Assembly: GCA_051530055.1 (NCBI GenBank)
Contig: JBMGUZ010000013.1
Location: 1 to 58,880, forward strand
DNA from: Neoechinorhynchus agilis
Lineage: Eukaryota > Animalia > Acanthocephala
Direction of reading: 5' to 3'
Length of the DNA stretch: 58,880 nucleotides
Shown: positions 1,994-50,504 of the stretch, in pieces
How positions within the stretch are numbered: the first letter of the stretch is position 1
How the letters are laid out: each line of letters begins with the position of its first letter
Notes under the pieces: generated by a model
Seen by the model: only the letters and a program-made list of their open reading frames with translations
Told to the model about the DNA's origin: nothing
The model's database searches: none
Made by a program: the position numbers and the translations under genes

Positions 1994-2069
1994 TCATATA
2001 TCATTGTCTTCGGGGTGAATTTGATTGTGCGTTGGCGAATCCTGCCCCCGGTGCTTTCGTTACTCATTT

Positions 2070-2116: not shown

Positions 2117-2165
2117 CTAAAATGGAGGATATGGACATCATGCACAGCCGGTCACGTCTGGGTGT

Positions 2166-4758: not shown

Positions 4759-4886
4759 CCGGCTGTGCATGATGTCCATATCCTCCATTTTAGATATCGA
4801 CTGAAGAGGCAAGGAAAACCTTGTGAAATATTTCGAATATAAATGAGTAACGAAAGCACCGGGGGCAGGATTCGCCAACGCACAAT
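4731..4886 (+). repeat. 3' pseudo-LTR of PLE-1
   Basis: Direct repeat of 2166-2321; contains the ORF stop at 4756-4758. Confidence 0.93.
4794..4840 (+). ncRNA. Minimal type I hammerhead ribozyme in the PLE-1 3' pLTR
   Basis: ATATCGA-CTGAAGA-G-GCAAGG-AAAA-CCTTGT-GAAA-TA-TT-TCGAATAT: CUGANGA core, stem II hairpin, GAAA, palindromic AUAU in place of stem III, stem I ATA-TCGA/TCGA-A-TAT. Predicted cleavage between 4832 and 4833. Confidence 0.75.
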
Positions 4887-6414
4887 GTAACCTCAAAAAC
4901 GTTCCTTTTTCGATCCCTACGTTGTCTGGGATAAGCGTGATCATCATACCCACGCCTTTGCCGCATGTGTCAATTCTCCTATCGCGCAAAACCGCTCTAC
5001 CATCTTTGGCCCGACCCCTCGATTGCAATGGGCTATTTGTTAAATCTAATAGAATTTGCGATGAAGGCCTCCATGGTTCTCGCCTCTTCTATGAAGAAGC
5101 CTTCCAAGTTAATGAATTAGGCTACCATTCTGGTACAATTGAGACGGATTCTTTTCAGTCAGAGAGGTTGATAGATCCGACAAAATCAGGCATAGGCGAT
5201 CCACTGTAATATGATAGAATGTGGTTTTGGAGAAAATTCTCAACTTTCGGACGAATTGACGTCATTGAAACCATATCGATTATATAACGTTATGTTTTTT
5301 GATGTTTCGTGCGCGTTATATATTAAAAAACCTAGATATTCATGTAACCTCAAAAACGTTCCTTTTTCGATCCCTACGTTGTCTGGGATAAGCGTGATCA
5401 TCATACCCACACGCCTTTGCCGCATGTGTCAATTCTCTTATCGCGCAAAACCGCTCTACCATCTTTGGCCCGACCCCTCGGTTGCAATGGGCTCTTTGTT
5501 AAATCTAATAGAATTTGCGATGAAGGCCTCCATGGTTCTCGCCTCTTCTATGAAGAAGCCTTCCAAGTTAATGAATTAGACTACCATTCTGGTACAATTG
5601 AGACGGATTCTTTTCAGTCGGAGAGGTTGATAGATCCGACAAAATCAGGCATAGGCGATCCACTGTTATATGATAGAATGTGGTTTTGGAGAAAATTCTC
5701 AACTTTCGCTATCTCCTAATTAACCAAAATTAATTCTAGGAATTTGATCCGCACAACAAGAATATAATAATATAAGCCAAAATGTTGCATACAGCCGATA
5801 GTTTTGACAAATTTTGATCGAATTCATGAAGATTCGCGTGTGGTAACGCTGGAATCATCCTCGTAGAGAAATAAATTTTATGGACCAACTAGAAATAATC
5901 AATTCATTGGGCAAATAAAACCTAATGAGTTCTATAGACCAGCCGATGAGCAGCATTTCGGATTTAAAGAGGTTAAGGACAACCGCTTATAACATATCAG
6001 CCGTGATAAAAGGCCAGACGCTACGAGGTTGTTTACACTTCTACGAGCTGATCGAACTCTAACAGGAGATGAAAATTTATGCACTGATGGTTTTACAGCC
6101 TATATATTCTATGCAGGATTCTCACATATCATTAAGAATTTAGTTCAAAGCCCAGAATGTGACTGAGCGTTATTGGAAGTACATACTGTATTCAATAACC
6201 TTGGATTTTACAGAATCCCAATTCCATCAATATTCAATGACTGGTTTTCAGCAATTGGAACCTTTACAAGCAAGAATAATGATACGACTTTTACGTTTAC
6301 AGCAGCGCACCGAAGCAATGCGAGCCGTCGTCCCGGTATTTGCATCATTAGCAGCAGCTGTCCTCAACAGAGCAGCATTCTCTGCCTGTCAATAACTGAG
6401 AAGATATTTACAAT
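4887..6414 (+). repeat. Right copy of the duplicated A/B block
   Basis: Starts at gtaacctcaaaaacg (equals 637) right after the 3' pLTR; ends at gatatttacaatt (equals 1981-1993), the point where the left copy meets the element. Confidence 0.9.
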
Positions 6415-10974: not shown

Positions 10975-12790
10975 GGCGGTACGAGAAATTTTGTTCGTGA
11001 TAATATGAACAGAGCGTCGTGTCGCGCGATGTGCAAGAGCCTGGAGGCCGTGAGCCGCAATTGATCGATGGCTTTTGAAAGGAACGTTTTCAGGTTAGAC
11101 AGGTTACCGATTGGAGACCCGAGAATGTCAGCTGAGTCGGTTGCAGTTGTCTTTGCTCCGGAGATTACGGTGAGCAGTTTAGATGCATCCTCTTGGTCGT
11201 CCGAAATGATTTCGCATTTGTCCGTTCTCAGGAATAGTCCGATATCGGCATTGATTTCGGAGATGCTGTTGATGTCGCGGATGAGCTGGTCGATCGCTGG
11301 CGGACAACCTCTGTCATCGCGGAGCGGCATATTGAATTGAACGCGTTCTCCATGTCAAGATTGACCACAGCCGTTCCCTTATTGATACCATTTCGACTAT
11401 ACGCTTGTGCTGAGTGTACGGCCGCCTCGGCTCCAGCAGGAACTCCGACTCCTAATTGAACCGGCAAGAGTTGGTCGATCAATCGATCGGTGACGAACTG
11501 ACACGCGGCTTTGGATGCCAATCGACGGAAGGTACAAACAACGGCAATGGGACGAACCCTTCCACCTTTTTTTGTGAAAGCGATCAGCTTGGTACCACAG
11601 AGTAGACGCGCGACTGGAGGAGGTACGGAACCGCGGACGATTACGCGTGTGAGCTCGGTGATTGCGTTCAGCAATCGCGTACCTTGAGCTCCAGAAGAGA
11701 AGCAGGTCAAATCCCGTAAGTGTCGAGGGCTTAAACCATCATGCCCTCCAGCTGACGATGGCGGAAAGGACATCAGAGCGTAAGTGACGGTGGAGACTGT
11801 AATAGGTATGAGGGGATCGCGGTCGGACTCTGTGAACGACGGATCATAATTTGGCTTGAAGCAACTCCGTCTGCGTGGAGGATGCTTCAATTTTAAGGAG
11901 TCGAGGGTGTCCTTGTTCGGCGCGAGTAGGCGGTCCGTTCCGCTTACAAGTCAAACGGCACCCCTTAGGTCGCCGTCCTCCAGCTTCTCGGAGCATTTCG
12001 CACGTAGTTGAGATTCCGAGTCGTGAGGAGCATTACGGCGATGGCTCTGCCATCCAAGATGCTCGACTTGTTCAAAGGACTCGAAAGCGTCGGACCGCTT
12101 GCGAATCTTTTGACTGAGCGATTTATTCTCGTTGGCTTCAGCAGTTTGTGTGGGAACACGTAAGACGGCTTTGGGAAACACGTGGAGGTTGAACCAGTCA
12201 GATGGTACGGTTAGATCTCGTATGATACGCTCGATCAGGCATGCTAATTTGGAAGCTACAGAGGACCTGGCGCCTTGCGGGATTCGTCCAATCATGCGGG
12301 TACCGTGTGAAAGCATCTCGATCAGTGGTGGAGGTGGGGCATTCGTGTCTGTGTCCACAGTTGTGAGTTCGGTTAAATTGGATGGATTGGATGGATTGGA
12401 TGAAGACGGAGAAGCAGGCTGAGTTGGAGGTTTTCTGGATCCAGGGCAATGCGAACCATGTTGACCGTGGGAGCGGACGAGACCACTGAGAGTCGGTTTG
12501 AAGACACGAAGACAAACACTGCATTTGACGGATTTGCATTGGAGACTGGGTACCCCTTCGCCAGCAAGCGAAACAGCCGTCGCTGCGGACGTTGTTGCGG
12601 CATGCAAACTGCCTCCCTCGATAGAGGCCGCACTCGCACTGAGGTTTGAACTATCGGAATGCAATCTTTCCGGTGTTCCTCTGTTTACCATTGCGGGAAT
12701 GTTTTCGAAGAGCACATGGGTTTCTCCTCGCCGGCGAGCGACGCAAGCCGGTGCGGCGGACGTTGTTGCAGTGGTACTCAATTATCCTTA
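10975..12790 (-). mobile_element. CRE-clade-like non-LTR retrotransposon, 5' half (zinc finger + RT), frameshifted and 3'-truncated
   Basis: CSVC..(H)..HG zinc finger; RT motifs SAGGHDGLSPRHL, LIAFTKKGG.VRPIAV, QLGVGVPAGAEAAVH, NLDMENAFNSI, then DD and IGLFLRTDKCEI; the QGDP region appears deleted. Confidence 0.8.
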
Positions 12791-13021
12791 AACGTTTTTT
12801 ATATTGTTAAGCAAATCGAAGTGTTGATCATCAATCAATTTGTAAATATGCGCAAAGATAGTGAGCGGCCTGTATTCCCTTAAATGAAGAATCGACGTTG
12901 CTCAAATCATTATACCAAAGCGAGGACATTAATCTTGAGAATCTTAAATCTAAACTTCACAACTCGACTACTAATGTAGTTCAATCAAAGTCCACATAAC
13001 AACATTAAGCAAAAAAGCCTG

Positions 13022-13285
13022 GTGGAACTTGGCATCGAGCTCCGAAATATGATCAATATTGGCATCAATAATGCCAATTGGATGTACGCGCGAGCAAATA
13101 TCGGAGAGTTTATGAGGCGGCCAATAACTGCCAATGAAATTCGTGAATCGGGTATTTTAGAAATAATTGATGAAATGATGAATGAAAAAGGCAGCGAAAA
13201 GATTATTCTGTCCCTTAAAAAAATCAAGTACAGATTGCAGGTAATTCTCAAAAAGTTGACCCTCAAATCGAAGCGGAAAAGATGA
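13022..13285 (+). pseudogene. Short ORF weakly resembling a TFIIS N-terminal (LW) domain
   Basis: ITANEIRESGILEII...SEKIILSLKKIK loosely resembles the helical pattern; upstream frame is broken. Confidence 0.25.
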
Positions 13286-13393
13286 AATTAGGAAATAAGA
13301 TTACTAAGCGCTGCTTGGTTGTTCAGCCGCCTGTTTTATCTGGTGATGATTGTTTGATAGACAATCCGACTGAAAGAGAGAGATTTTATTCAA

Positions 13394-13432
13394 ACACCGA
13401 GCTTTCGCCGTCCAACGGCTTCTTCAGGGTGT
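13394..13432 (-). ncRNA. Minimal type I hammerhead ribozyme at the 3' end of PLE-2
   Basis: Minus strand ACACC-CTGAAGA-A-GCCG-TTGGA-CGGC-GAAA-GC-TC-GGTGT: perfect 5-bp stem I, 4-bp stem II, palindromic AGCU stem III, CUC cleavage triplet. Confidence 0.82.
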
Positions 13433-14890
13433 AATCTGCAATGCGAGTGGAGGTTCACATGAGATTCATGACGGCAGACAACTCATCCTTCTGGTTAATG
13501 AGTGTCCTACCGACCGATGCCCGCTAGAGTCCTCACGATCCCGGGTCTCTCGGGATATGATCAGCGCTTCCGCTATCGACAGTTCGACGGGATCCTGCGC
13601 TTTGTACATTATGCGCGTGGACAGCTGAACTGTTCCATCCGGGTGGACTCGCGAATAATGTTTCGCCCACGGTGTCGTCACATACGATTGCGCACTTGGG
13701 TTCAACGAGTTTCGTACATGCTCGGTTACTCTTTGGCGAAGTGGCCTTTCTGTTTTGCCCACGTACGTGACCAAGTGGCCACGGTCAATCCGACACCGTT
13801 CACACCGGATCTCGTAGACCACACTGCTCTGATCGCACATCTTCCAGTCACGATCAATGGCTTGCTGACGCTCCTCGTCCATCCTCGCACCTGCTGCGTA
13901 TCTGCACATTAGGCACGACCGAGGGCATTCCTGATGATCCTCATGATGCCTCGTTCTCGTCAGCATCCTCCGCAGCGTTCTACACCCTCTGTGCACAATA
14001 CGCACATTCAACCCTGCTTGCCTGGGCAGTACTTTAACTCTCTTCGTGAATATTTCACTCACGTACGGAATTCGTAGGATCGGCCTATCGTCCTTTCGTT
14101 CCCTCATGGGTCCAGCGTCTCGTCTAATTCTATTTTCCACTTCTCGCTGGAATCCTTCGATCTCCTCTGTCGAATATCCGTTGTCCGCGAAGATCTTGTT
14201 TACTGCTTCGACCGCTCCACGCTTCGCGTCCCACGACGATGAGCAGGTGGTTGCCGATTTATGCATACCAGCGTATATCGCCGCTTTCATCGCCCAAGGA
14301 TGGTGAGAATCTCGGTGCATCACAATCGACTTCCTGCATGGCTTTCGATACCAATTGAAGTTGGACACATCGTCGGATTTGAAGCGGAGATTGAGGAATG
14401 GCAGATAGTCCGAAGGTTGGTCTCTCGTAACCCGAATCCTCCTATTCGAGTCCATTGAATTTAATAGTGATTCAATGGTATCGACCTCATCATCCTCGGT
14501 GAAGTTCAGCAACACATCGTCCACATAGCGGAGGTAAACTTGACTCGACGCTAAATGTGGATAGATGTGCAGTCTTTCCAGGTCCTCGAGGTAGAGGATG
14601 GCCAATACCGGAGCTAAACTATTTCCCATTGCGAGACCACGAACTTGCTTATATAGCTGGTTTCGATAACGAAAAAGGGTTGCACTTCAGTACCAATCGA
14701 GTCAGACCAATAACATCGTCTGGAAGTAGACCGAAGAGGTCATGAGGATCGAGCGGTAATCCATATGACGATCCGTCAAGTTTTCTATGCCCTCTCGCAA
14801 CAACAATTTTCTCTCTGTGTGGTCATCATCTCGCGAGGCACGACCGAGGGCATTCCTGATGATCCTCATGATGCCTCGTTCTCGTCGTCG
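13394..14890 (-). mobile_element. Second Penelope-like element (different family), 5'-truncated and rearranged; RT C-terminus + GIY-YIG
   Basis: YKQVRGLAMGNSLAPVLAILYL, YLRYVDDV, LPFLNL, WYRKP, YVGKTERPLRQRVTEH, IAEALII; hammerhead and AATAAA downstream of the ORF. Confidence 0.88.
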
Positions 14891-16614: not shown

Positions 16615-19557
16615 TTAACAAAAGTACAAGAGACCACTCAGGCGATCGCTGAGTGAAAGAATAAGAAACTTCAATTTCTTCTCTGTAGGTTTCACTTCGT
16701 GGCTCACCTTTTCATCTCCATTTTTGACAACCAAGTCATCTTCATAAAAATAATCTCGGACTGTTGGATCGCAGAGCTGCAAAAATTCTACATAATGTCT
16801 CGCCCGGAAAGCGACGTGATGGGCATAATAACAAGGTGCCGGGATTGAGACTGAACGAAAGCATTTAGCATACAAATGGCACAAATTAAAAGTTACTTGC
16901 ATAAGATTATTCTCATTAAATCCAATGGAATCATAGATTAATCTGTACCGCGTTGGTCTCGATGTTCCTTGGATTCCCGCGTGGCTCACCAGAAATGCAT
17001 CGACTATGGAATCCATGCAGACTTCTGGGGAATATACGGTTCCGGGAAGTGGATTTCCGTTGCGATCGCCGTCTCTTCGATCAGAAGGGAACATTCGGAG
17101 ATGATGCCGCTTCTGGACGACAACGACGCTGAGTTTAATCTCGTCCCCCATTCCTTCTTTTCGACAGGCTTCTATTATGCCATTGACTTCGAATCGATTG
17201 ACTAAGTCGAGTTGAGTATCGGAAACGCCATCTCGGTACAAAAGGATTCGGTCCGGCAAACATTTGTTTCGCTCTCGATACTTTCCCAGTATCCTTCGCA
17301 TTATTGTTTCTAAGTTATAAACAATTTCTATACTTGACTTTGAAGCTTGAGGATTTTTCTGAAGGGAAATCTCGGTAACATAGGAATGAGGAACAAAGTC
17401 AACCGAAGCTACAACGGCGGCTATCGAAACTCGGCTAAGGTGTCCTTGACTATTCAGAACCCGATGGGTAACATCGAGACCGACAAACATGGTCCTTCCG
17501 TAATTTCCAATTTGTGGATTAAACTTAAATGGCACTGGATTTCGTGTTAGACTCACGTTAACACCGCCGAGCTTTGCACAAAGTTTGTTACAAATATTTG
17601 CGATAACCTGACCGTCCGGATTACCGCTCCTATCTCGTCTTTTTATCGCTTTGTCAGTGATGAACTGAGTAATCGATCCGCTGACTAGTTCCGCAGCAGC
17701 CTTAACTGCTGAATATTGGTAGTTGTTCCGTCTTGCAAAAAAGAATGTCACTTTTGTAGTATTTCCTGATAAGATATATCGAGGAAATTGAACGTTGAAT
17801 TCGTCTCGATGCCACATATGACGATGTCCATTTTCAGTCAGATCGATTCCATATCTTCGTGCCGTTTCAATCAGCCTCTTTAAGAATTGCTGGACGCTAT
17901 CCTCGTCTATTGACAGATTATCCGGAAAAATGTAATAAGACCATGTCAAGTCTTTTCCAACTCCTTTAAAGAATGAAAATTCTTTACCGGCATTCCAGGC
18001 TCCATGATGCCTCTGATATGTTATTTGACCTTGAGAATGATAAATCATTGGTATCGGTAAAAGACCGGCATCGACTACAGCCATACGATCGGATACTTCG
18101 AGTCTCCATTCTTTAAAATATTTCGCACACTCGTTGTTCTTGTTTGATTGCAAATACATTAATTTCGAATCAATATTAAACTTCCTCTGAGTCGGAGAAA
18201 GTGTTGTTCTTTTAATAACATCCGCCATTTGATTCTTAAGTTCTTCGTTCTGTACCTTTCGTGCTGCGAGATATACAAGTTCCAATGGAACTACGGCATT
18301 TCCTCTTTTACCCGTCGCAACGGTCACAAAATGAGGCAAACAATCATGGCCGTAATGTTGTTTGAAAAATTGACCAACGCTAATATTCGAGTGACCATCG
18401 TCATTGTTTAAAACGAATTTGTATTCAAAAGGTGATTCCATCTTAAAGGAATTAAAGGTGGCGTACCGCTTATGCTTCCCTTCCGAATCATATTTTACAA
18501 TGATCTTTGTTCGGTCCTTCAAAAGTTCACTAACCGATTGTAATAATTGAGGATTAGTTTTGCTGGCGGTTAAATCGTCTTCCGATATTCCTTTTTTCCG
18601 GAGGAAATCAAGCAACGATATTTCGGGTGCGATAACTGCATTTGCGACATCGACATTCAATGCTAAAGCGTCGAATGCAATCACGGCACTGGCGAAGATT
18701 CCGTTAAAGAGTCCTTTGAATGAATCGAGTCGATGAGCAGGTGGATCATTTAAAGGAAAAAAAGATCTCCCAAAGTTAATTAGAAGATTCGATAGTGCGA
18801 ATTTAAAGACAATATCGATTATTGCCATCTGCGGACGGAGTGCAACAGATTTTCCGATCATGTTTCTTATCAATGCAATGTCCTGCTCCATATCGATTTC
18901 ATTGGTTTTCTTAAATATAACCAAATACTTTTCAGAGACGAGTATTGAACACTCATCGCTGCCTGTTGCGAAATCGCTTAGTGAGTAAACCACACGACCA
19001 CCGTTGTATACAGTTCGGTACTTGAATTCAGATTCACGATCATTTGCCATTTTCAATATCGCTTTTTTAATTATAATTCGCTGTTTTAATGAAGATAAGA
19101 CGTTTTCTCCGTTTGGGTTATTGACAACCAAACCTATATCTTTATCTTCAATCTTCACATCGTACTGCTTTACTCTGAAAGGAGTTGAATTGGTCAGTGG
19201 AAAATAATTGATCATCATTTTCATCGACTTATTTAATTTAATTTTTGTACAGTAAACATTTTTTGGACGTGTTTCCACGCTGCATTCTTGTCGCAGCGTA
19301 TTTATTTCAAAACATTCAAAATCATTAGGTTTAAAAGTATGGATCGACATCACTTCTTTTGCAATCAAGCCTATGAATTTATGGGATTCATCTATCGACA
19401 TATTAATTATTTTGCTTTCTTCATTATATTGTCTTTGTGGTTCTGCATCGTTTCCCCTTTGACCTTGATTTCTCTGGTACCGTCCACGGTTTGGCCATCT
19501 CCCACCTCGATATCTTCGGTTGCTTCCATTGTACCGATTGTTGTTATTGCTGGACAT
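16615..19557 (-). CDS. Argonaute (AGO-clade, divergent), single exon, 980 aa; PAZ-MID-PIWI with predicted catalytic DEDH tetrad
   Basis: PAZ (ISVGQFFKQHY..VVPLEL), MID (YSAVKAAAE..GSITQFI, NICNKLCAKLGGVN), PIWI (GLDVTH, SIEIV, LLYRDGVSD, QKRHHLR, FLVSHAGIQGTSRPTRY, SVSIPAPCYYAHHVA, terminal LYFC); RG-rich N-terminus. Confidence 0.96.
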   Translation of the reverse strand: MSSNNNNRYNGSNRRYRGGRWPNRGRYQRNQGQRGNDAEPQRQYNEESKIINMSIDESHKFIGLIAKEVMSIHTFKPNDFECFEINTLRQECSVETRPKNVYCTKIKLNKSMKMMINYFPLTNSTPFRVKQYDVKIEDKDIGLVVNNPNGENVLSSLKQRIIIKKAILKMANDRESEFKYRTVYNGGRVVYSLSDFATGSDECSILVSEKYLVIFKKTNEIDMEQDIALIRNMIGKSVALRPQMAIIDIVFKFALSNLLINFGRSFFPLNDPPAHRLDSFKGLFNGIFASAVIAFDALALNVDVANAVIAPEISLLDFLRKKGISEDDLTASKTNPQLLQSVSELLKDRTKIIVKYDSEGKHKRYATFNSFKMESPFEYKFVLNNDDGHSNISVGQFFKQHYGHDCLPHFVTVATGKRGNAVVPLELVYLAARKVQNEELKNQMADVIKRTTLSPTQRKFNIDSKLMYLQSNKNNECAKYFKEWRLEVSDRMAVVDAGLLPIPMIYHSQGQITYQRHHGAWNAGKEFSFFKGVGKDLTWSYYIFPDNLSIDEDSVQQFLKRLIETARRYGIDLTENGHRHMWHRDEFNVQFPRYILSGNTTKVTFFFARRNNYQYSAVKAAAELVSGSITQFITDKAIKRRDRSGNPDGQVIANICNKLCAKLGGVNVSLTRNPVPFKFNPQIGNYGRTMFVGLDVTHRVLNSQGHLSRVSIAAVVASVDFVPHSYVTEISLQKNPQASKSSIEIVYNLETIMRRILGKYRERNKCLPDRILLYRDGVSDTQLDLVNRFEVNGIIEACRKEGMGDEIKLSVVVVQKRHHLRMFPSDRRDGDRNGNPLPGTVYSPEVCMDSIVDAFLVSHAGIQGTSRPTRYRLIYDSIGFNENNLMQVTFNLCHLYAKCFRSVSIPAPCYYAHHVAFRARHYVEFLQLCDPTVRDYFYEDDLVVKNGDEKVSHEVKPTEKKLKFLILSLSDRLSGLLYFC

Positions 19558-23820: not shown

Positions 23821-24318
23821 GACTGTCTCCTTAGTAAAGATTATCGATTTTCCAGAATAGCGATCAGGTTTCAGAACAAGTTCAGCGATGTGTTGATGGC
23901 AAATAAATGGATATCCTGAAAGTGGAATGATTTTATTCTAGATTTTCAGGCGAAAATTCGATGCATTCATGTTTTTCATTTTAAGCAAAGAACACGCTGT
24001 CGACCTCGAGAATTACGAGACTTTGGACTGTCTTCTTAGTAAAGATTATCGATTTTCCAGACTTGTGATCAGGTTTCAGAACAAGTTCAGCGATGTGTTG
24101 ATGACAAATAAATGGATATCCTGTAAGCGGGATGATTTTATTCTAGATTTTCAGACCAAAATTCGATGCATTCATGTTTTTCATTTTAAGCAAAGAAGTT
24201 CATGCTGTCGACCTCGAGAATTACGAGACTTTGGACTGTCTTCTTAGTAAAGATTACCGATTTTTCAGACTAGTGATCAGGTTTCAGAACAAGTTCGGCG
24301 ATGTGTTGATGGCAAGTA
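23821..24318. repeat. Tandem repeat, ~205-208 bp unit, ~2.4 copies
   Basis: gactgtc(t/c)..cttagtaaagatta recurs at ~23821, 24026 and 24234. Confidence 0.85.
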
Positions 24319-25091
24319 AACGGCGTAGAGGATGCAATATTAACAAAATTAAATCATTTTTCTTTATTTTTGTGTGACCAAAAGAATATTAAACTGCCGC
24401 ATTCGATTATATTAGAAGGCACTTCGGTTTCCGCCAATGAGAGAAACGGAGAACCATAAATAGCATCGTGCATTGGGCAGCGAAGAGCATGTAAGAAATT
24501 TAAACCATCTTGGATAAAATGGAAGCTTAATCGGTATTTGTTTTAGAGTAATCTTCGAAATGATTTAAAGTTTATGAGTGCTGTGAACTCGAGTTGTAGG
24601 CAAAAAATCTGTTCTTGATTCGTTACAAAATCAGTAATAAAAATTTGAATAATAATCGAAATGCCGCAGCGCTCAGAGATATCCGAGAAGGGCCATCCGA
24701 AGAAGTTGTTGATAAAGAGCAAGGATTTTATGAACAATGTTACAATGTTTTTCACAAAAAGGCGTTCCCATTCTATGAAACAATCGACTATATGCGGGAT
24801 TTTTGCAATATAATTGGAATTCAAGCCAGAAAAACTTTCCTGATTTCAAGGAAACACTCGACGAATTGTTGCGGCGAAAGTGTGATTGTTAATGCGATTT
24901 AGAAACAATTGAAACGGGGAAAACAAGGGAGCAAACTTATATGAGCTTTTATATTTACATTCAAGCGATAGGAAGACCAAATCTGTGTTTATAAGTAAAA
25001 ATTAGATGTTTCAAAGAATCTAAAAATAAATGTATAAGCATTTTGTATCGAAAATAGACAAGTCTTGATTTTCAAACGCTACGAGGTTAAG

Positions 25092-25237
25092 AAAAAATTA
25101 ACTGGACGGAACATGGATTTGTAACGAACAAATTTAAACAAGGCATTGCAATCGCTTTAATCGGTGTCGCCGAAACGTGATTTCTGTCTGGTGCTCTGAA
25201 TGTTAAAGTGAAGAAACTCATTGAGGCGCAAGGAAAC
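25092..25237 (+). repeat. ~145-bp dispersed direct repeat, copy 1 (copy 2 at 27433-27574)
   Basis: aaaattaactggacg...ggtgtcgccgaaacgtgatttctgtctggtgctctgaatgttaaagtgaagaaactcattga is shared at about 90%. Confidence 0.85.
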
Positions 25238-25686: not shown

Positions 25687-26859
25687 CTAGTTGTTCAGTT
25701 GCGAGTCGTCCATTGTATTGGCGTCTTCGCCATTTTGTTCATTCGTTGTATCCACTGATTCTTCGTTTGATTTATCAAATACCAACAAATGCGATAAAGA
25801 TTTTTCCAATGGTTTCAATCCATACGACTTTTTAATCGATAGCTTCACCATAAATGATTGTCGCGAAACGTCGTAGCCGATAATCTTTGCGATTAATCGT
25901 TCCTTTTGTGCGAATCGGGTGTCCATTTGCCGAAACCGATACTCTAACGGTCCTTGAGCCATTTCTTTAGTTGAACACCCATCCAAATGACACTTAAAAA
26001 TCGTCTTTCGAATAGCGAGTATCGATGGAGAAGCAACGTAGCATATTAATTTAGAAACAAACCGTATCTTTCCGGAATCTACTTCTTCGACAAGAAATCT
26101 ATGACCCTGGTCCTCCAGGATCTTTACTCTTTTGAATGATTTATCGGAATCTTTGACGAGACAATAATGGCCAGGATAAAGTTCTCTCGATACCTCCTCA
26201 GCGTGACGTCCATTTGAATTAATTAATTCTCGATTCAGATAAGTTCGCCATTCCTGTACAAATTGGGTTATAAAAATATTTTCAATGTTGCAGAAGTGCA
26301 CCAGCTTATAAATAATTTCGATATTAATCAAATATTTGCCGTCCTCGTCCTTTCTTATAAAATCACAAAAGACATTCCCTTCAAATGCTGCCTCGGGAAC
26401 TTGTGAGTGGTTTTGATTTACAAATACGGAATTGCCATGTTGGTTTTCCAATTTTAGTTTACATGGAAGGGCCAGCCTCGGAATGGAGTTGAAAATTCTT
26501 TTAACCGGTCGTAGATTTACCAATGGAAGCCACTCTTGGTGACCGTAATCAATGTAAAAGACTTTGAATGAAGATGTCAGAATATTCACTTCTGTAATTT
26601 GACCTCGGTACCACTTTCCGTCCACAAGGGACTTGCCAATACATTTGGAATTAAGACCATACACAAGAAATTGATTGAAACGAAGAGATTCATAAACATT
26701 TCGTAGACCGATCTCAAGATCCAATCGATTTTTGAAGATTAAATTTGGTAGAAGGTAAATATTTTGAGGATTATCCATGTAACTGACTTGACAGTAGACA
26801 GAATCTTGTAGAGAAACTATAAACTGCGGGTAATCCGCTGGAGGTACAAAAGTGCTCAT
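25687..26859 (-). CDS. Tandem extended-Tudor domain protein (TDRD-like, small-RNA pathway type)
   Basis: Tudor 1: VSYMDNPQNIY..DGKWYRGQI..KVFYIDYGHQE..LRP..IPRLALPCKL. Tudor 2 is degenerate: GHYCLVK..FKRVKI..FLVEEVDSG..FKCHL. Confidence 0.88.
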   Translation of the reverse strand: MSTFVPPADYPQFIVSLQDSVYCQVSYMDNPQNIYLLPNLIFKNRLDLEIGLRNVYESLRFNQFLVYGLNSKCIGKSLVDGKWYRGQITEVNILTSSFKVFYIDYGHQEWLPLVNLRPVKRIFNSIPRLALPCKLKLENQHGNSVFVNQNHSQVPEAAFEGNVFCDFIRKDEDGKYLINIEIIYKLVHFCNIENIFITQFVQEWRTYLNRELINSNGRHAEEVSRELYPGHYCLVKDSDKSFKRVKILEDQGHRFLVEEVDSGKIRFVSKLICYVASPSILAIRKTIFKCHLDGCSTKEMAQGPLEYRFRQMDTRFAQKERLIAKIIGYDVSRQSFMVKLSIKKSYGLKPLEKSLSHLLVFDKSNEESVDTTNEQNGEDANTMDDSQLNN

Positions 26860-27432: not shown

Positions 27433-27574
27433 AAAAAATTAACTGGACGAAACATGGATTTGTAACGAACAAATTTAAAAGCATTGCGATAGCTTTAATC
27501 GGTGTCGCCGAAACGTGATTTCTGTCTGGTGCTCTGAATGTTAAAGTGAAGAAACTCATTGAAACGTAAGGAAA
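27433..27574 (+). repeat. ~145-bp dispersed direct repeat, copy 2
   Basis: Matches 25092-25237. Confidence 0.85.
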
Positions 27575-27907: not shown

Positions 27908-29062
27908 TTAGTATTTATTTCGCAAAACCGCCGGAACAGTGAGTTGTTCGCCCGCTAACAAATCTCGAACGGTGAAAAGAGCCATTGCTTGTCTGTCTGT
28001 TCCATTAGATTTAAAGTGAACCTTCTGAATGAGCAAATTGGCATTGCTCTGAGAGCGATGAAAAAGATGAGACACGTTGGTGATTGGCGCTACGTTTCCA
28101 TTTCTCTCCTTATCGCTGTCCAGCTGACAAACAAAATAACCCTTTGGAAGATCGTGGTTCACACGGACACCCAATCTTTTAGTTCTATGAACAAATACCT
28201 CCAAATAAGCTCGAATTCCTTGGCTGACCAATGTGTTTGGACAGTGCCCTGGACATTTACACGCATCGCCACATTCTTGAACTCCTCGTGGAATTCCACC
28301 TTCGGGCAATCTCAAATATTCGTAAGTATTTTGCTTCGAAGTCAGTGTGTTTTCTAAACTAAAATGCTCGCAAACCGGAGAAATGTAATGTAAATGAAGC
28401 ATACGAAAAACTCGAATATGGATCTGTGAATTTAAGATTTAAATAATCAATCTTTACGATTGCTTTACGTAGATCCTTTTTTAGTTTAGGTAAAATATCT
28501 TAGATTCTACGATAAAAAAACGAATTTCATTCTTAAACAGATCTGTAAATTTTCTGAAGGTATCAATTATTGCATTTTAGTATCCGGCAATTCTTCAAAA
28601 TTAACGTAGAATTCAATGGGAAGTTTAATCCATGGTGCGAATTGCATTTGTTTAGACTAAACGCCACTCTTTTAAACTCGCCTAACGCCAACATTTGAGA
28701 GCATTTCTAGGTATCAAATTTGGCGAAACTTGCGAGGATCCTGGTAGACGATAGAAAACATTCACATCAAAATGACAACGATGCTCATTGCAGAGTGGAA
28801 TTTCTTTTCTTTCCAGACCATTCGAAATATCTTTATCCACGACATTTTTCCCGCTTCCAGCGTACTCATAATCGATGTCCACATTTTCTTGGAAAGTAAA
28901 TAAATCGATCGATAAATGTGACCTTGTCGTTTCCAACTGTTCGAAAACTTGACGGATTTTGTAGAATGATCGAAAACAAGGCGATACGTAAAACACTTTT
29001 TTGGTCGTCCCGGTTCGATTTATCATGCGTTTCCAACCGTAGATTAAAAATATTTCAGGCAA
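27908..29062 (-). CDS. SETDB1/2 (Eggless)-like MBD + pre-SET + SET protein, divergent; 5' end not located
   Basis: MBD: LIYGWKR..VFYVSPC.RS....QVFEQL...LSIDLFTF; DISNGLERKEIPLCN; pre-SET: YEYLRL..GVQECGDACKCPGHCPNTLVSQG; SET: LEVF..LGVR..DLPKGYFVC..NVSHLFHRS..NLLIQKV..GEQLT. Confidence 0.75.
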
Positions 29063-31894
29063 AGAAAACCTTGTGAAATATTTCAGGCAGGGAAAACCTT
29101 GTGAAATATTTCAGGTAAAGAAAACCGTGTGAAATATTTCAGGCAAGGAAAACCTTGTAAAATATTTCAGGCAGGGAAAACCTTGTGAAATATTTCAGGT
29201 AAAGAAAACCTTGTGAAATATTTCAGGCAGGGAAAACCTTGTGAAATATTTCAGGCAGGGAAAACCTTGTGAAATATTTCAGGTAAAGAAAACCGTGTGA
29301 AATATTTCAGGCAGGGAAAGCCTTGTGAAATATTTCAGGCAGGGAAAGCCTTGTGAAATATTTCAGGCAGGGAAAACCGTGTGAAATATTTCAGGCAGGG
29401 AAAGCCTTGTGAAATATTTCAGGCAAGGAAAACCGTGTGAAATATTTCAGGCAAGGAAAACCTTGTGAAATATTTCAGGCAGGGAAAACCTTGTGAAATA
29501 TTTCAGGTAAAGAAAACCTTGTGAAATATTTCAGGCAGGGAAAACCTTGTGAAATATTTCAGGCAGGGAAAACCTTGTGAAATATTTCAGGCAGGGAAAA
29601 CCTTGTGAAATATTTCAGGCAAGGAAAGCCTTGTGAAATATTTCAGGCAGGGAAAACCTTGTGAAATATTTCAGGCAGGGAAAACCTTGTGAAATATTTC
29701 AGGCAGGGAAAACCTTGTGAAATATTTCAGGCAAGGAAAACCGTGTGAAATATTTCAGGCAGGGAAAACCTTGTGAAATATTTCAGGCAGGGAAAACCTT
29801 GTGAAATATTTCAGGCAAGGAAAGCCTTGTGAAATATTTCAGGCAGGGAAAACCTTGTGAAATATTTCAGGCAGGGAAAACCTTGTGAAATATTTCAGGC
29901 AGGGAAAACCTTGTGAAATATTTCAGGCAGGGAAAACCTTGTGAAATATTTCAGGCAGGGAAAACCTTGTGAAATATTTCAGGCAGGGAAAACCTTGTGA
30001 AATATTTCAGGCAGGAAAACCTTGTGAAATATTTCAGGCAGGGAAAACCTTGTGAAATATTTCAGGCAGGGAAAACCTTGTGAAATATTTCAGGCAGGGA
30101 AAACCTTGTGAAATATTTCAGGCAGGGAAAACCTTGTGAAATATTTCAGGCAAGGAAAACCTTGTGAAATATTTCAGGCAGGGAAAACCTTGTGAAATAT
30201 TTCAGGCAGGGAAAACCTTGTGAAATATTTCAGGCAGGGAAAACCTTGTGAAATATTTCAGGCAGGGAAAACCGTGTGAAATATTTCAGGCAGGGAAAAC
30301 CTTGTGAAATATTTCAGGCAGGGAAAACCTTGTGAAATATTTCAGGCAGGGAAAGCCTTGTGAAATATTTCAGGCAGGGAAAACCTTGTGAAATATTTCA
30401 GGCAGGGAAAACCGTGTGAAATATTTCAGGCAGGGAAAACCTTGTGAAATATTTCAGGCAGGGAAAACCTTGTGAAATATTTCAGGCAGGGAAAACCTTG
30501 TGAAATATTTCAGGCAAGGAAAACCTTGTGAAATATTTCAGGCAGGGAAAACCTTGTGAAATATTTCAGGCAGGGAAAGCCTTGTGAAATATTTCAGGCA
30601 GGGAAAACCTTGTGAAATATTTCAGGCAGGGAAAACCTTGTGAAATATTTCAGGCAGGGAAAACCTTGTGAAATATTTCAGGCGGGAAAACCTTGTGAAA
30701 TATTTCAGGCAGGGAAAACCTTGTGAAATATTTCAGGCAGGAAAACCTTGTGAAATATTTCAGGCAGGGAAAACCGTGTGAAATATTTCAGGCAGGGAAA
30801 GCCTTGTGAAATATTTCAGGCAGGGAAAACCTTGTGAAATATTTCAGGCAGGGAAAACCTTGTGAAATATTTCAGGCAGGGAAAACCTTGTGAAATATTT
30901 CAGGCAGGGAAAACCTTGTGAAATATTTCAGGCAGGGAAAACCTTGTGAAATATTTCAGGCAAGGAAAACCTTGTGAAATATTTCAGGCAGGGAAAGCCT
31001 TGTGAAATATTTCAGGCAGGGAAAACCTTGTGAAATATTTCAGGCAGGGAAAACCTTGTGAAATATTTCAGGCAGGGAAAACCTTGTGAAATATTTCAGG
31101 CAGGGAAAACCTTGTGAAATATTTCAGGCAGGGAAAACCTTGTGAAATATTTCAGGCAGGGAAAACCTTGTGAAATATTTCAGGCAGGGAAACCTTGTGA
31201 AATATTTCAGGCAGGGAAAACCTTGTGAAATATTTCAGGCAGGGAAAACCTTGTGAAATATTTCAGGCAGGGAAAACCTTGTGAAATATTTCAGGCAGGG
31301 AAAACCTTGTGAAATATTTCAGGCAGGGAAAACCTTGTGAAATATTTCAGGCAGGGAAAACCTTGTGAAATATTTCAGGCAGGGAAAACCTTGTGAAATA
31401 TTTCAGGCAAGGAAAACCTTGTGAAATATTTCAGGCAGGGAAAACCTTGTGAAATATTTCAGGCAGGGAAAACCTTGTGAAATATTTCAGGCAAGGAAAA
31501 CCTTGTGAAATATTTCAGGCAGGGAAACCTTGTGAAATATTTCAGGCAGGGAAAACCTTGTGAAATATTTCAGGCAGGAAAACCTTGTGAAATATTTCAG
31601 GCAGGGAAAACCTTGTGAAATATTTCAGGCAGGGAAAACCTTGTGAAATATTTCAGGCAGGGAAAACCTTGTGAAATATTTCAGGCAAGGAAAGCCTTGT
31701 GAAATATTTCAGGCAGGGAAAACCTTGTGAAATATTTCAGGCAGGGAAAACCTTGTGAAATATTTCAGGCAAGGAAAACCTTGTGAAATATTTCAGGCAG
31801 GGAAAACCTTGTGAAATATTTCAGGCAGGGAAAGCCTTGTGAAATATTTCAGGCAGGGAAAACCTTGTGAAATATTTCAGGCAGGGAAAACCTT
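29048..31894 (+). repeat. Tandem array of a 28-bp unit AGGCA(G/A)GGAAAACCTTGTGAAATATTTC, ~100 copies
   Basis: 2847 bp / 28 is about 102. Each unit contains a stem-loop (gcaRgg-aaaa-ccttgt), and the array carries the 12-bp palindrome TGAAATATTTCA once per period. The unit at 29449-29476 is identical to PLE-1 4807-4834. Confidence 0.98.
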
Positions 31895-32449
31895 TACTTT
31901 TTATTGCGAATTATCAAATGATTTATTTATTTGATAATTTTCGGCCTTCGCTTAGGCTTTTTTCGGTCCATACAATTTATTGATTTCCATATTTCGGCAG
32001 CCAATGAAACACTAACAATCGTACCGAAATATCGGACCCAATTAATTTTGCTTCAAATTTTCCGCCATATAAAAACACAATTCAATTTAACAAAATTGAT
32101 GACTTTCGGATCAAAACGCAAAATAAAAGCGAAATGAACGAGCAATAATTTTTATTGATCGATTATTGATTGCGTCAATGGGTTCGTATTTCCATAATGA
32201 GTACAAAGTGTTTAGACTAAAGTCTTGTAACTTTTCCTCTTTTTTTAAATTTTTCGATGTTGCTTATTGAACCGACTCAAAAAATCGGAAATCGTGACTA
32301 TATCGTCGGTTTCAGTGAATTTCAATTTTAAATAGCCATTGTTTCGCAGAAGGATTTTAATTTTTAGTAGTGATCGGAAATGCAACAAAATCTTCTCATC
32401 AAACGATACTTTTCTCTCTAAAAACTTCATTATTGAAATCAAACGGGAT

Positions 32450-33727
32450 TTATTGCTGAAATCTTTTTTTTACTGCCATTAATTGAACTTTAAGCTTCCA
32501 AACTTGCTCGCTTTCCAACTTTTTGGTTACTTTTAACACATTTCCGTCGATGGTAACATCAGGATCCTTTTCGTTCAAGAATGAATAACTATAATCCACA
32601 TCGTGCTTGTCTGAGGATTCCTTATATCGATATTCCCAAGTTCTATGTCTTAGATTCGTTATTTCGATTTCAATATCCGTAGTTATAACTCGTCCACTTT
32701 CTTTAAAATTATCCACCTTTCTTCTAATGAGTCCGCTTGAATCTTCACCGATTCTTATTTCTCGCTTTGCTCCTGCTGGTAATTGATCGAGCCGAACATT
32801 TGCAATAATACGTCCTTGTTCTCTAATAGACATTTTCCCAGTTGGTAGAAATTCGTTACTTGTAATTTCATAAATTCTACTAAACTTCAACTCTTCTCTT
32901 TTCTCATTTATTGTTTCATATGAAGACCAAAAATGTGGCGTTATTTTAGCGTCCAGAAACTCTTCATAGAGGTCACTACGAGCACTTAGCTTAAAGGGTT
33001 TACTAATCGTGTATTGGAAAAGCCCTCCGATTTCCTTATGATCGCCAATATCGATCGAAGGAGGCGGTGCTGCGTCGGTCATTGATGCGTAGGCTATCGT
33101 CCGTCTCACGTGACTTGCTCTTTTTGGAATTGGATGTGGAATGCTGGCAACATCTCCTCCAAATAATTCAGCGCTATTGACTTTGTATGAATGAGTACTC
33201 GGATTAGAAATGACCGCATAGCATTTTATCGTGGCATTCTGGTCTTTTTCCTCAACGTCCAATCGATATATCGGTCTCCATTTTATTTGTCGATCTAAAT
33301 AACTGAGAATTGCCGTCTTTACGCTGGGATCATGGATGTGAAATCTAACGGAAACCACGTTTTTCATCGGAGCTGATTTAAATTCGAACTGTGATCGATT
33401 AGCGTAATAGAACCTTTTTGTCTCAATGTCCTGAACAAGACTGTTATCATCGTCAATAAAAATGGCTCCTTTGCATTCCCCCGTTTTCTCGGTTCTTACG
33501 AAAATCTCTTCTCCTTCAAGACTGTGATTCTGGGTTGTAACAGTCGTCGAAACTCTTCCATTTGGGACTTCCAAATCAATACTGTCCGGTACGATATGGC
33601 AAAAATCCGATTGATGAAATCGAACAGTCGCCTTTGCCTCTTCTAATATGTCGATGTTTTCCCTAATTTCCGAGAATTGATCGTATATTCTTAGGTCAAT
33701 CGAACTTTCTTCATTGCTCAATGACAT
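32450..33727 (-). CDS. Intronless 425-aa protein, DUF4139-like
   Basis: LSYLDRQIKWRPIYRLDV, AVISNPS...ELFGG, FQYTISKPFKL and FLPTGKMSIREQGRII resemble DUF4139 family blocks (recognition from memory only). Confidence 0.5.
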   Translation of the reverse strand: MSLSNEESSIDLRIYDQFSEIRENIDILEEAKATVRFHQSDFCHIVPDSIDLEVPNGRVSTTVTTQNHSLEGEEIFVRTEKTGECKGAIFIDDDNSLVQDIETKRFYYANRSQFEFKSAPMKNVVSVRFHIHDPSVKTAILSYLDRQIKWRPIYRLDVEEKDQNATIKCYAVISNPSTHSYKVNSAELFGGDVASIPHPIPKRASHVRRTIAYASMTDAAPPPSIDIGDHKEIGGLFQYTISKPFKLSARSDLYEEFLDAKITPHFWSSYETINEKREELKFSRIYEITSNEFLPTGKMSIREQGRIIANVRLDQLPAGAKREIRIGEDSSGLIRRKVDNFKESGRVITTDIEIEITNLRHRTWEYRYKESSDKHDVDYSYSFLNEKDPDVTIDGNVLKVTKKLESEQVWKLKVQLMAVKKRFQQ

Positions 33728-34319
33728 TCTGGTCTGAAGATCTATAAGCGATGAAAGCGAACACTTATAGAAAATGTGGCGAAACTCACTGAGTCACTCT
33801 TTTCATCATCGACAACTACACACCGTGAGTTTTATGTGGTCGTAAACAGTAGTTGCCCAAAACAATTTATTTACTCGTAGCAACCTATTGTAAAATGATT
33901 TAATCGTTATTGGAATGTTAAATGCAACCTTCATGATCTAGTTGAGGACGTTCTCAGGTGATTTTGAAATGGTGTAAAAAAGAGCGGTTCGGTAAGTTTA
34001 TGAACTAGAAGGGCATTAGTAAAAAGATGGGAAGCCGATGAGAGCTTAGACATCAACGTTCTCCCTTTGCTGAGTGCGTATGTGTGTAGCCATTTCAAGT
34101 TTGAACTTTCCTGATGTCCGTGGGCTCTTAGCTCTCATTGTCTCGAGAGTTTTATCTGAAAATATCGGATCACATTTGTCGATTTCTACCATTTTATTCC
34201 CAAACCAACTGAGACTAAACGAATCAACAAGCCCTCGGATTATTTAAGACCGGCGTCAATAAAATTCAAGGATAATTTTGGGCGAAATCGACGTGGCCCG
34301 TCCTCCTCAACCTCCCTCT

Positions 34320-39024: not shown

Positions 39025-42000
39025 TCATTGAACTGAAAACATTTTCCCTAATCGGCTATCTTTGTCCAAGTTCAGCATGTTTCTAATCTCAAACAACGAC
39101 AGGCCACTTGCTAGAAGTTTTGTCCTCACAATCGTGAGTAGAGACGGAGTATTAGAAAGATGAGCGGCGAGTTCATTTAGCTGATGTTCCGTTTTAAGAG
39201 GGAAATTGTTTGTTTCTTCAGTAAAAAAGGATGTACTTAGATAACTGACTGTTCTCTTAAAAGGAAAACAGACGCATATCTGATAAAGAAGAAGAATAAA
39301 ATTCGAAACAATACTTCCAGTGTACGGGGCAGTTGACTTCATCTCGTTGTATTTCAAGATTAATAGATCGTCTTCAGGTTGTCTATCGTTACTATTGGCC
39401 GAACTAAGATGTTCCTGGAGTTTGGTAAGTTGGTTGGTATGCAACACTTCGTATTCGTATTTAATGTAGTCCAACACTGCAACAACGAATCGCTTTGAGT
39501 CAAACATTTCGGTCGATGGCACGAATAACCTAAACATGGTTTTTCCGATTTAACAGGTTTCAACGAATATTTCTTAAGAAAAACAGCTACAAAACGTTTT
39601 TCTTTGCACAAAATACAGGAGACATCTAGCTGATATTTCCAAATCCTTTTTTTTCGGATTTGTGATATCTGTCATAGTTCTTGAGTTATACGTCTTTCAA
39701 TTTTTACACAAACCAACTTGATTATCTATATCAAAACATCAATTTATCGAAGCAAACCCGATTGATCAGTTCAAATTTCTCTTTTCATACTTCGTACCGT
39801 CTTTCACGATGCACGTAATTTCAAAAGGAAGAAATATAAAGTCTGAATTCAAACGGAAACATTATTTTCATTAAATTTTAGTCTATCCCTTTCTTGTCCG
39901 GCGTATTTTTAGGCATAAACCCAAACAAATTACACCAGAGAAGTGATATAACCACATAGTCTCCAATGCACGGTTAAAAGTTTGTACATTCCTCCGGATC
40001 CTCAGATACCTCCAGGAGGCGGGACTCATCACTGAGTTTCCTCCCACCAACGAGATATTTCGTCTGCTTTGGCTGTGCGTCATTGGCGGTAACGGATTCG
40101 AACCGTTATATCACTTCTCTGATGTAATTGGTTTGGCTTTATGCCTAAAAATAAGCCGAACAAGAAGGGACAAACTAAAACCTAATCATGATAACAAAAC
40201 CGGCTTGCCAGTAAAAACTTAAAATTGAAACATTGTTTGAATCTCTTAAATCGTTAGCGATTATTTAAGACAGAAACTTCATCTATAAATGGAAAATCAA
40301 CGTGTTATGATCTCCTTAGTTTTGAAGTTGACAATTGGGAGAGGGCTGTTGTAATGACAAAAAGAAAATCTTTATTTCCGAGAGTTTTCTCCGTCTTAAG
40401 GCTTCTTCAGGAATTGTTAAAGTGTTTTATGAGTGCGGACAAAATACTTTAACAATTCCTCAAGAAGCCGTAAGACGGCGAAAGATCTCGGAAATAAGGA
40501 TTCAATTTATCATTACAAGAGTTCAAGCAAATGACGATATGTGAGGTACCCGGGGAATGTGATTATTGGAATTATTGTTTAGAAGTCTTCATTCGCGGTG
40601 AATGATTTCTTTTCGATTAAAAAGACGTTCTGTGTACCTTGTCGGATTACCGGGTGTAGACCTAAACAATAATTCCAAGAAATGACGATATGTGAGGTAC
40701 CGGGGGAATGTGATTATTGGAATTATTGTTTAGAAGTCTTCATTCGCGGCAAATGATTTCTTTTCGATTAAAAAGGCGTTCTGTGGACCTCGTCGGATTA
40801 CCGGTTTCAAGAGTTCAAGTTTTCCATTTTCGAAAACAGACTTAGGTCCCATCGTAAGGAAAGTCGCTCACCTGCTAGGAGAATAATTACTCAATATCGT
40901 CCATAAAGCACTCATGTACCTATTAAGTAAGTGCCTTCCACCACAGAGCCCGCCTGATAACAGATTGTCGATACATGAGAATTGAAAGCCATGATCTATC
41001 AATTGATGCATAATATTTAGTTTAGTATCATCCGAGTGAACGGCCAATTTAAATGCGGCATCCATTAGAGTGCCACGGATACGGTATTGCCGTAACTCCT
41101 TCATTTGATCTTTGCTAATAGAATCCAAGATGGCATCGAATGCGTTAACGTAGCTGTGTTTTATACATTTCAAAAGAACCATAAACAATTGATCACTTGA
41201 ATGGGTAGATTTGTTAATCAGAAGTCGACAAATGTATGCGTTGTTATTGGAAGCTGCAATATGGAGCGGAAGCTTAAATTGCCCAAATCCTTGATGAACG
41301 TTGCGATGGTGGCTTAGGTAGAGCTCGCGATAGTTTAAGAATAATGATTGCCATCGAATGAATTAAATTTGGCCATTTTTTGTGAAAATAATTTTCTCAA
41401 CTTCTTGATTAAAACACAAACTGTTGATTATAGGCACCAATAACCTTTCAAGGTACTTACAAATGTTATTTAGAAGTCTTCACCCTTCATCATTTTTAGA
41501 ACTGTAAAGTCTCTAGTACAAAAATTATTTACGGGTTGAATATTTCTAAATAATATCGATATTTCAACGCGCCTGCCATTTCATTATGACGGAAAAATTG
41601 AAGGAATTTACTGAATTCGATATTTCAGCACAATGGTGTGAATTTATAAGTGTTGTAAATTTATTTTAATCAAACAGATCTAACTCGAGGATTTACTTTT
41701 AAATTCAATTGATCACCGAGATTTAATTAAGATTTAACGAATAAACCTAACGTTTTAAGGGATTTAGATACTCGAAAAACCTGAGCGTTGCTGTTAATCT
41801 GTGAGCCTGAGTTTGTAAAGGAAGTCAGAAGCTATGATCGTGTATTTTAAACTTTTGACAATAAAAAGTTCCAAAGCAATTTCTCTACATCATATAGATT
41901 TTACCGATCTGTGTTAGGGAAGCGAATGTATCACTCCTCAAATACGTCCTTGGGTGGGGAATATAAGTGAATTTCCTTCAGCGGTATTTCGTCCTCTTTT

Positions 42001-46459: not shown

Positions 46460-47130
46460 AGTTTAAAGAAGAAATCGTAGGTTTTGAAAACGAATCGGAA
46501 AAACACAAGAAGGCTAAGAAATATGTTCAAGAATAAACAGATTAAGCGAGACAAAATAAAGGAGAGAAATTTAAAGAAGAAATCGTAGGTTTCTTTTAAA
46601 CAAAAAAGGGAAAAACAAGAATGCTAAGAAATATGTTCAAGAATAAACAGATTAAGCGAGACAAAATAAAGGAGAGAAATTTAAAGAAGAAATCGTAGGT
46701 TTCTTTTAAACAAAAAAGGGAAAATAACAAGAATGCTAAGAAATATGTTCAAGATTAAACAGATTAAGCGAGACAAAATAAAGGAGAGAAATTTAAAGAA
46801 GAAATCGTAGGTTTCTTTTTGAAAACGAATCGGAAAAACACAAGAAGGCTAAGAAATATGTTCAAGAATAAACAGATTAAGCGAGACAAAATAAAGGAGA
46901 GAAATTTAAAGAAGAAATCGTAGGTTTCTTTTAAACAAAAAAGGGAAAAACAAGAATGCTAAGAAATATGTTCAAGAATAAACAGATTAAGCGAGACAAA
47001 ATAAAGGAGAGAAATTTAAAGAAGAAATCGTAGGTTTCTTTTAAAAAACGAATCGAAAAAACAAGAATGCGAAGAAATTTGTTCAAAACTAAACAGACCA
47101 AGCGAGACAAAATGAAAAAAGTAAAGATTT
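46460..47130. repeat. Tandem repeat, ~110-bp unit, ~6 copies, upstream of the SREK1-like ATG
   Basis: gaagaaatcgtagg recurs every 110-114 bp. Confidence 0.92.

Positions 47131-48024: not shown

Positions 48025-50504
<2,480 letters not shown>

Follow-up and report, generated by a model that had tools for sequence, protein, structure and literature searches.

A tandem array of a partial hammerhead sequence, probably derived from a Penelope-like element, borders a degenerate SETDB1-type gene fragment in Neoechinorhynchus agilis

The contig JBMGUZ010000013.1 of the acanthocephalan Neoechinorhynchus agilis (Acanthocephala; assembly GCA_051530055.1; 58,880 bp) was analysed in its entire length, which is called the window here. 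It carries a head-to-tail array of a 28-nt unit, which spans ~2.85 kb and lies between a DUF4139-like gene and a fragment of a SETDB1-type gene. The same contig holds an intact Penelope-like element (PLE), PLE-1, and the unit is homologous to a piece of its pseudo-long terminal repeats (pLTRs), namely a piece of a stretch that fits the published minimal hammerhead ribozyme (min-HHR). The positions of the features are collected in Table 1.

The array was delimited by Tandem Repeats Finder (TRF) with a period of 28, 101.9 copies, 96% matches, and a score of 5323. Splitting at the unit start gave 102 units, with a start-to-start spacing of 28 nt in 95 cases and of 27 nt in six. The pattern of the unit matched 94 times in the window and not once in the shuffles. 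The consensus AAATATTTCAGGCAGGGAAAACCTTGTG, which reads AGGCAGGGAAAACCTTGTGAAATATTTC in the ribozyme register, is found unchanged in 65 of the 102 units. Six of the 28 positions are variable, and the 10-nt palindrome GAAATATTTC is invariant across the 95 full units. The variant units gather among the leftmost ~20, beside the reading frame of the methyl-CpG-binding domain (MBD) described below, while the right two-thirds of the array are nearly uniform. This is the usual minisatellite pattern of old edges and a recently homogenised core. It should be noted that the RNA of either strand of the array folds strongly, owing to the internal palindromes of the unit; this is a property of the sequence and no evidence of function.

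The consensus agrees with PLE-1 positions 4807–4834 at 27 of 28 nucleotides, and the variant AGGCAAGG, represented by seven units, agrees with them at all 28. Further matches lie at 2242–2269 of PLE-1 (26/28, plus strand) and in the inverted partial copy at its 5' end (2076–2103). The reverse complement of the unit reaches 15/28 at best, and therefore the PLE-sense (plus) orientation of the array is unambiguous. By its intact open reading frame (ORF) and near-identical pLTRs, PLE-1 looks recently active. Its 3' end carries a ~45-nt "tail" corresponding to the ORF start, and the inverted partial copy creates a palindrome of ~356 bp.

Besides the element itself, no further PLE-1 sequence was found on the contig, and the left flank of the array has no similarity to the PLE. 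To the right of the array, a short stretch (TATTGCGAATTATCAAATGA) can be aligned with the PLE at just the distance at which PLE sequence continuing from the last unit would lie. The score of this alignment was equalled by 14 of 2000 shuffles and by 40 of 2000 random windows, and the growth of the array within a short PLE fragment is suggested by it at most. Beyond 31921, nothing in the right flank resembles the tail or the body of the PLE. Two other N. agilis contigs (L002 and L003; 35 kb) hold no further unit or hammerhead copy. The 22-mer common to the PLE and the array (GGAAAACCTTGTGAAATATTTC) has exact matches in two JGI metagenome contigs, L004 and L005. The match at 574–595 of L005 was dismissed as a chance match, as its surroundings (…GCTGAAGGAAAACCTTGTGAAATATTTCAGAATGAG…) are unrelated and show no PLE context. 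The match at 576–597 of L004 has nearly the same offset and the same strand as that of L005.

According to Cervera and De la Pena (PMC4209133), the hammerhead of metazoan PLEs is a minimal type-I motif located in the pLTR. Its helix I measures 4–5 bp, its helix II is long and begins with an unpaired 5' nucleotide, and its helix III of 1–2 bp is closed by a small palindromic loop that works in dimers (PMC4209133). The Rfam search gave no hammerhead at the gathering threshold in the whole window, nor at E ≤ 10 within 1500–5500; the sole strong cmscan match, "mir-549" at 2131–2214, was rejected as the palindrome of the PLE inverted repeat. The hammerhead assignment is based on a descriptor built to the published min-HHR architecture and not on Rfam. 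Two sites, and no more, fitted this descriptor in the window, and each of them belongs to PLE-1 pLTR sequence; the chance expectation is 0.005 sites per window (mean of block-shuffled windows).

The site in the 3' pLTR reads tcga-CUGAAGA-g-gcaagg-aaaa-ccuugu-GAA-auauu^ucga. It contains the core boxes C3-U4-G5-A6-N7-G8-A9, G12-A13-A14, A15.1-U16.1, and H17, a 6-bp stem (gcaagg/ccuugu) preceded by an unpaired g, a helix I of 4 bp (ucga/ucga), and a palindromic AUAU. The minimum free energy fold of 4790–4845 forms exactly helices I and II (z = -2.8). The PLE-1 ORF has no relative above 32% identity, and hence there were no sister copies for testing the covariation of the hammerhead. The prediction of a PLE-type minimal hammerhead at this site is well founded by its sequence.

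In this register, the array unit extends from A9 to C1.2. It includes stem II, the GAAA box, and the cleavage site, and it is without C3–G8 of the CUGANGA box and without the strand that forms the 5' side of helix I. The whole of 29048–31894 is free of CTGANGA. Since both parts are missing, the units are incapable of self-cleavage and can be described as dead ribozyme fragments.

An earlier reading of this DNA, made from the sequence only, had proposed a ribozyme-derived array of about 100 tandem copies in the orientation of PLE-1, flanked by minus-strand genes. The derivation from a piece of the PLE-1 stretch that fits the min-HHR is borne out, as are the copy number, by both TRF and unit splitting, and the orientation; the DUF4139-like, SET-like, and Tudor ORFs are indeed all on the minus strand. 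Where that reading spoke of a "hammerhead/ORF-start region", the hammerhead part is accurate and the ORF start only approximate, as 8 nt separate the end of the unit from the start codon of the PLE.

To the left of the array lie two minus-strand ORFs of SETDB1 type. The first, which abuts the array, encodes the MBD and the start of the pre-SET domain, and was recognised by the Pfam MBD model with 28.5 bits (cut-off 21; E 1.2e-6). An exhaustive HMMER search with this ORF returned 65 relatives. Eight of them were scanned against Pfam, and full SETDB1-type proteins with Tudor_5, Tudor_4, MBD, pre-SET, and SET domains were among these; the SETDB1-type relatives have 350–630 residues with Tudor_5/Tudor_4 N-terminal to the MBD. 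When the SETDB-like sequence was used for a word-index protein search, the only match was the ORF of the window itself. The second ORF, of 164 codons, aligned with EHMT1/SUV39-type enzymes over the end of the pre-SET and the start of the SET domain (E 4e-9), and both of its domains score under the Pfam cut-offs. The SET domain has a deletion of 23 residues, HRSQ in place of NHSC, and EQLTVPAV in place of the ELxxDY motif with its Tyr, and the ORF stops ahead of the post-SET region.

The SETDB1-type proteins P0127 and P0133 were also compared with the contig by tblastn. Only two blocks were obtained, 29053–28787 and 28357–28127; the Tudor_5/Tudor_4 region and the C-terminal half of SET are absent across the 58.9-kb contig in this comparison. 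The homology to SETDB1 begins at 29053, 6 nt from the edge of the array. The NCBI gene model begins at 28402 and omits the MBD exon, and nothing is annotated over the array or the MBD ORF.

These data agree with the sequence-only reading in that the MBD frame runs into the first repeat: the residues L-P-E-I-F are encoded by 29062–29048, that is, by 15 nt of the first unit, and the frame stays open to 29110, 63 nt into the array. The "SETDB-like gene" of that reading holds with regard to the MBD, pre-SET, and SET domains of SETDB1 type and fails as a whole gene, as only a central fragment remains. A displaced N-terminus, which it had put forward as one possibility, fits the absence from the contig of the Tudor-bearing 350–630 residues of the relatives and the start of homology at 29053. 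Judged by its sequence, the locus is a central, degenerate fragment of a SETDB1-type gene and not a working SETDB gene. It is probably a pseudogene or a partial duplicate.

The other possibility put forward was that the array is a whole intron. In this case, it would be a 5' untranslated region (UTR) or coding intron of a functional SETDB-like gene, spliced from gtaaag at 31897 to cacaAG at 29070 in the first unit. Both motifs were found on the minus strand where they had been proposed, the donor at 31897–31892 and the acceptor cacaag at 29075–29070. The AG at 29071/29070, which lies in the array, is the nearest one upstream of the MBD codons, with no AG between 29069 and these codons. The open MBD frame within the array also speaks for an intron, as do in-frame GT..AG introns that could connect the MBD and SET ORFs. 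However, every unit bears the same AG|GT, and the splice motifs are therefore not specific. Each of the three frames meets a stop codon in the 40 nt upstream of gtaaag, and no exon that begins with ATG finishes at this site. In the MBD frame itself, K-R-M is not preceded by any ATG, and a start at K-R-M would cut into the domain. The missing N-terminal 350+ residues with the Tudor domains, the degenerate SET domain, and the start of the annotated model at 28402 argue against a functional gene as well. We regard the intron as highly improbable and do not retain the whole-intron proposal.

The interval upstream of the array points in the same direction. Five AATAAA signals of the minus strand lie between the stop codon of the DUF4139-like gene and the array (as plus-strand TTTATT, they start at 31900, 31922, 31926, 31976, and 32151), and a sixth match, at 32449, overlaps the stop codon. 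This interval looks like the 3' end of a gene followed by non-coding DNA rather than like a first exon. The exact look-up of the 425-aa DUF4139-like ORF found nothing on record.

With a probability of roughly 0.7, we conclude that the array is a transposon-derived minisatellite without a function of its own, located where a partial and decayed SETDB1 copy breaks off at its 5' end. Direct observation provides the anatomy of the array, its homology to the PLE, and its orientation; it also shows that the ribozyme is incomplete, that the gene is cut short at the edge of the array, and that coding sequence is missing upstream. The array would have arisen from a 28-nt piece of the PLE terminal repeat, with the extent from A9 to C1.2 described above, that became tandemly duplicated. 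A PLE fragment may have been inserted or captured at a break and amplified afterwards. The duplicate would then have expanded to ~100 copies, likely by replication slippage together with unequal exchange. Two self-complementary parts of the unit, the stem II hairpin and the GAAATATTTC palindrome, may have helped the amplification. The DNA in which the array sits is non-coding and follows the DUF4139-like gene, and the array coincides exactly with the 5' breakpoint of the SETDB1 copy, which has kept only its MBD, part of pre-SET, and a degenerate SET.

A different origin can be considered for the same, now possibly inert, array. The reverse transcriptase (RT) of the PLE, the closest relative of telomerase RT, could have made it by reiterative copying of pLTR RNA during the repair of a chromosome break. 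The location of the array at a gene breakpoint would suit such an origin, and the 3' boundary of the unit lies at most 2 nt from the predicted self-cleavage site. Moreover, the PLE RT in vitro uses internal start points on its RNA and is active at both strands of the DNA (PMC11167929). Against this, nothing identifies A9 as an RNA 5' end, and neither the PLE body nor its tail, which corresponds to the first ~45 nt of the ORF, can be recognised beside the array. A variant edge with a homogeneous core is the product of unequal exchange at the DNA level. The unit also spans the cleavage site (U17/U1.1), and a self-cleaved RNA end therefore cannot be the boundary of the template. Telomerase-like copying of such an end was judged unlikely for this reason, and an RT origin as a whole appears improbable.

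Several points weigh against an inert minisatellite. The missing gene model over the array is weak evidence, because repeats were masked prior to the gene prediction in N. agilis (PMC12690905). The array is strongly homogeneous, with its 65 identical units, and is 96–100% identical to the intact PLE; this fits a recent origin and would equally fit maintenance. An array-free second copy of the locus did not come to light, and the order of events given above is a tentative one. Finally, the locus lies amid genes of silencing type, namely an AGO-clade Argonaute, a Tudor gene, and the SETDB fragment, and the prevailing direction of transcription would give antisense PLE RNA from the array.

The last point leads to the explanation that the array is a source of small RNAs directed against the PLE. 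Minus-strand transcripts, originating, e.g., from read-through of the DUF4139-like gene or from a promoter within 31.9–32.4 kb, would hold ~100 copies antisense to the hammerhead and could be processed into PIWI-interacting RNAs (piRNAs) or small interfering RNAs (siRNAs). Their target would be the pLTR, which is present at both ends of PLE transcripts. The array is antisense to the direction in which the neighbouring genes are transcribed, and the source PLE was apparently active recently. In other animals, piRNAs from satellites and from 3'UTRs exist, and phased piRNAs are produced by the nuclease Zucchini. In N. agilis, small RNAs of at least 27 nt bear a ping-pong signature, there are clustered loci and orthologues of PIWI, and no Zucchini, Dnmt1/3, or RNA-dependent RNA polymerase was found in it; public small-RNA libraries exist for this species (PMC12256650).

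Meanwhile, five AATAAA signals separate the stop codon of the upstream gene from the array, and just 28 nt of the 2.9-kb element are represented in it. The orientation is a single 50:50 observation, and the 35 kb of other contigs hold no other copy. The adjacent Argonaute belongs to the AGO clade and not to the PIWI clade (E 1e-68 against human AGO2/3 and 1e-35 against PIWI proteins). The agreement between the unit length and the length of piRNAs, which the sequence-only reading had stressed, is numerology without evidential weight: no mechanism stands behind it, and the species is reported to lack a homologue of Zucchini (PMC12256650). An anti-PLE source is biologically possible, with the orientation as its one support in the sequence, and we consider it rather unlikely. 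For the minus-strand transcripts, the ~28-nt guides, and the antisense blocking of ribozyme folding that the sequence-only reading had suggested, the sequence likewise offers nothing apart from its geometry. It is even more doubtful that the host has turned the dead ribozyme fragment into a trap, in which minus-strand read-through of the 102 copies would give antisense small or long RNA. Similarly doubtful is the effect such a trap might have, that is, the silencing of PLE-1 or the blocking of its self-processing through the hammerhead region in both terminal repeats.

Table 1. Features of the window, contig JBMGUZ010000013.1 (plus-strand positions).
Feature	Position	Strand	Remark
28-nt array	29048–31894	+
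Possible degenerate PLE continuation right of the array	31902–31921	+	Against PLE 4829–4846, 17/20, 2 gaps
ORF with MBD and start of pre-SET, SETDB1-type	28682–29062	-	First 15 nt are array sequence
ORF with end of pre-SET and degenerate, shortened SET	27908–28402	-	NCBI: stand-alone 164-aa gene
DUF4139-like gene, upstream neighbour	32450–33806	-	440 aa (NCBI model)
PLE-1, source family	1990–4886	+	Intact Penelope-like element
PLE-1 ORF	2278–4758	+	826 aa, RT and GIY-YIG, intact
PLE-1 pLTRs	2166–2321 and 4731–4886		99.4% identical
Inverted partial copy at the 5' end of PLE-1	1990–2165
Minimal type-I hammerhead motif (predicted), 3' pLTR of PLE-1	4797–4836	+	Descriptor scan
Second intact hammerhead motif (predicted), inverted partial PLE copy	2074–2113	-	Descriptor scan
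Copy of the motif in the 5' pLTR	2232–2271	+	GAAA to GAAG (A15.1 to G); fails the descriptor
Argonaute	16615–19557	-	NCBI model
Tudor gene	25687–26859	-	NCBI model
181-bp × 21 tandem array	50761–54588		Extends over the final ~24 codons of the adaptin ORF
Beta-adaptin ORF	54517–55485		3' end overlapped by the 181-bp array
Other tandem arrays	23821–24320, 40524–40804, 46462–47113, 48447–49068, 57592–57911

Tandem arrays of at least 250 bp make up 15% of the contig, and one with a 181-bp unit overlaps the end of the adaptin ORF. An array that abuts a gene is therefore not unusual here. The AGO-clade Argonaute, which is very divergent, and the neighbouring Tudor-domain gene have a recent duplicate on the small contig JBMGUZ010000028.1 (L003; 4179–5252 and 6490–8554). 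The duplicated Argonaute is 87% identical, and the duplicated Tudor ORF is, by eye, near-identical from PNLIFKNRL onwards. This duplicate contains neither the SETDB fragment nor the array and thus offers no empty-site comparison. Its presence elsewhere without them marks the region as a mosaic of partial duplications. A third paralogue (60%) lies on JBMGUZ010000036.1, and all three paralogues are on small contigs.

On both sides of the Tudor gene, there is a dispersed repeat of ~145 bp (25092–25236 and 27433–27574), the copies of which are 94% identical, have the same orientation, and bear an identical short ORF (MSFFTLTFRAPDRNH...). They may represent a small mobile element, or they may mark where a duplicated segment ends. 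On the minus strand at 11228–14629, in DNA of 48–53% GC, there is another Penelope-like element, which is broken and has weak RT and GIY-YIG matches in separate ORFs; the hammerhead descriptor finds no site in it.

The SETDB1-type locus can be compared with the H3K9 methyltransferases of SETDB1/Eggless type, which are built as Tudor_5-Tudor_4-MBD-preSET-SET-postSET. As in these, the MBD directly precedes pre-SET and SET. Unlike these, the locus is without the Tudor domains, without the C-terminal half of SET that bears NHSC and the Tyr, and without post-SET.

With piRNA clusters, the array shares homology to a transposable element (TE), an orientation antisense to local transcription, and occurrence in a species that has piRNAs; the status of a cluster is, however, defined by small-RNA output. 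Moreover, piRNA clusters normally mix the fragments of many TE families, whereas the array consists of ~100 copies of one 28-mer. If the array gave rise to much of the antisense RNA against the ribozyme of an active PLE, it would represent a silencing locus with a single target, which would be unusual, in a phylum that has received little study.

The monomers of retrozymes are some hundreds of nucleotides long. Like non-LTR retrozymes, the array consists of tandem repeats that would descend from the hammerhead-bearing pLTR region of a PLE (bioRxiv 10.64898/2026.07.22.740005; PMC4209133). Each retrozyme monomer contains a complete type-I hammerhead, and the monomers yield self-cleaved circular RNAs, which those of the array would not. 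The array was therefore rejected as a non-LTR retrozyme: its 28-nt monomer has neither the CUGANGA box nor a 5' strand for helix I.

The closest counterparts are satellites seeded from parts of TEs, Penelope elements included, which are well documented (reviewed in PMC12692304). The array has the feature by which TE-derived minisatellites are recognised, a head-to-tail monomer homologous to a contiguous TE segment. As in the reviewed cases (PMC12692304), the monomer is a contiguous structural or terminal piece of the TE, and the array is local, with a homogenised core and variant edges. In contrast to them, the monomer has just 28 nt and comes from inside a ribozyme motif; and unlike genome-wide satellite families, it is known so far, as far as could be seen, from one array. 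As a TE-derived minisatellite, the array would be a neat but ordinary case of satellite seeding from the termini of a retrotransposon, which also marks the rearrangement that left the SETDB1 fragment.

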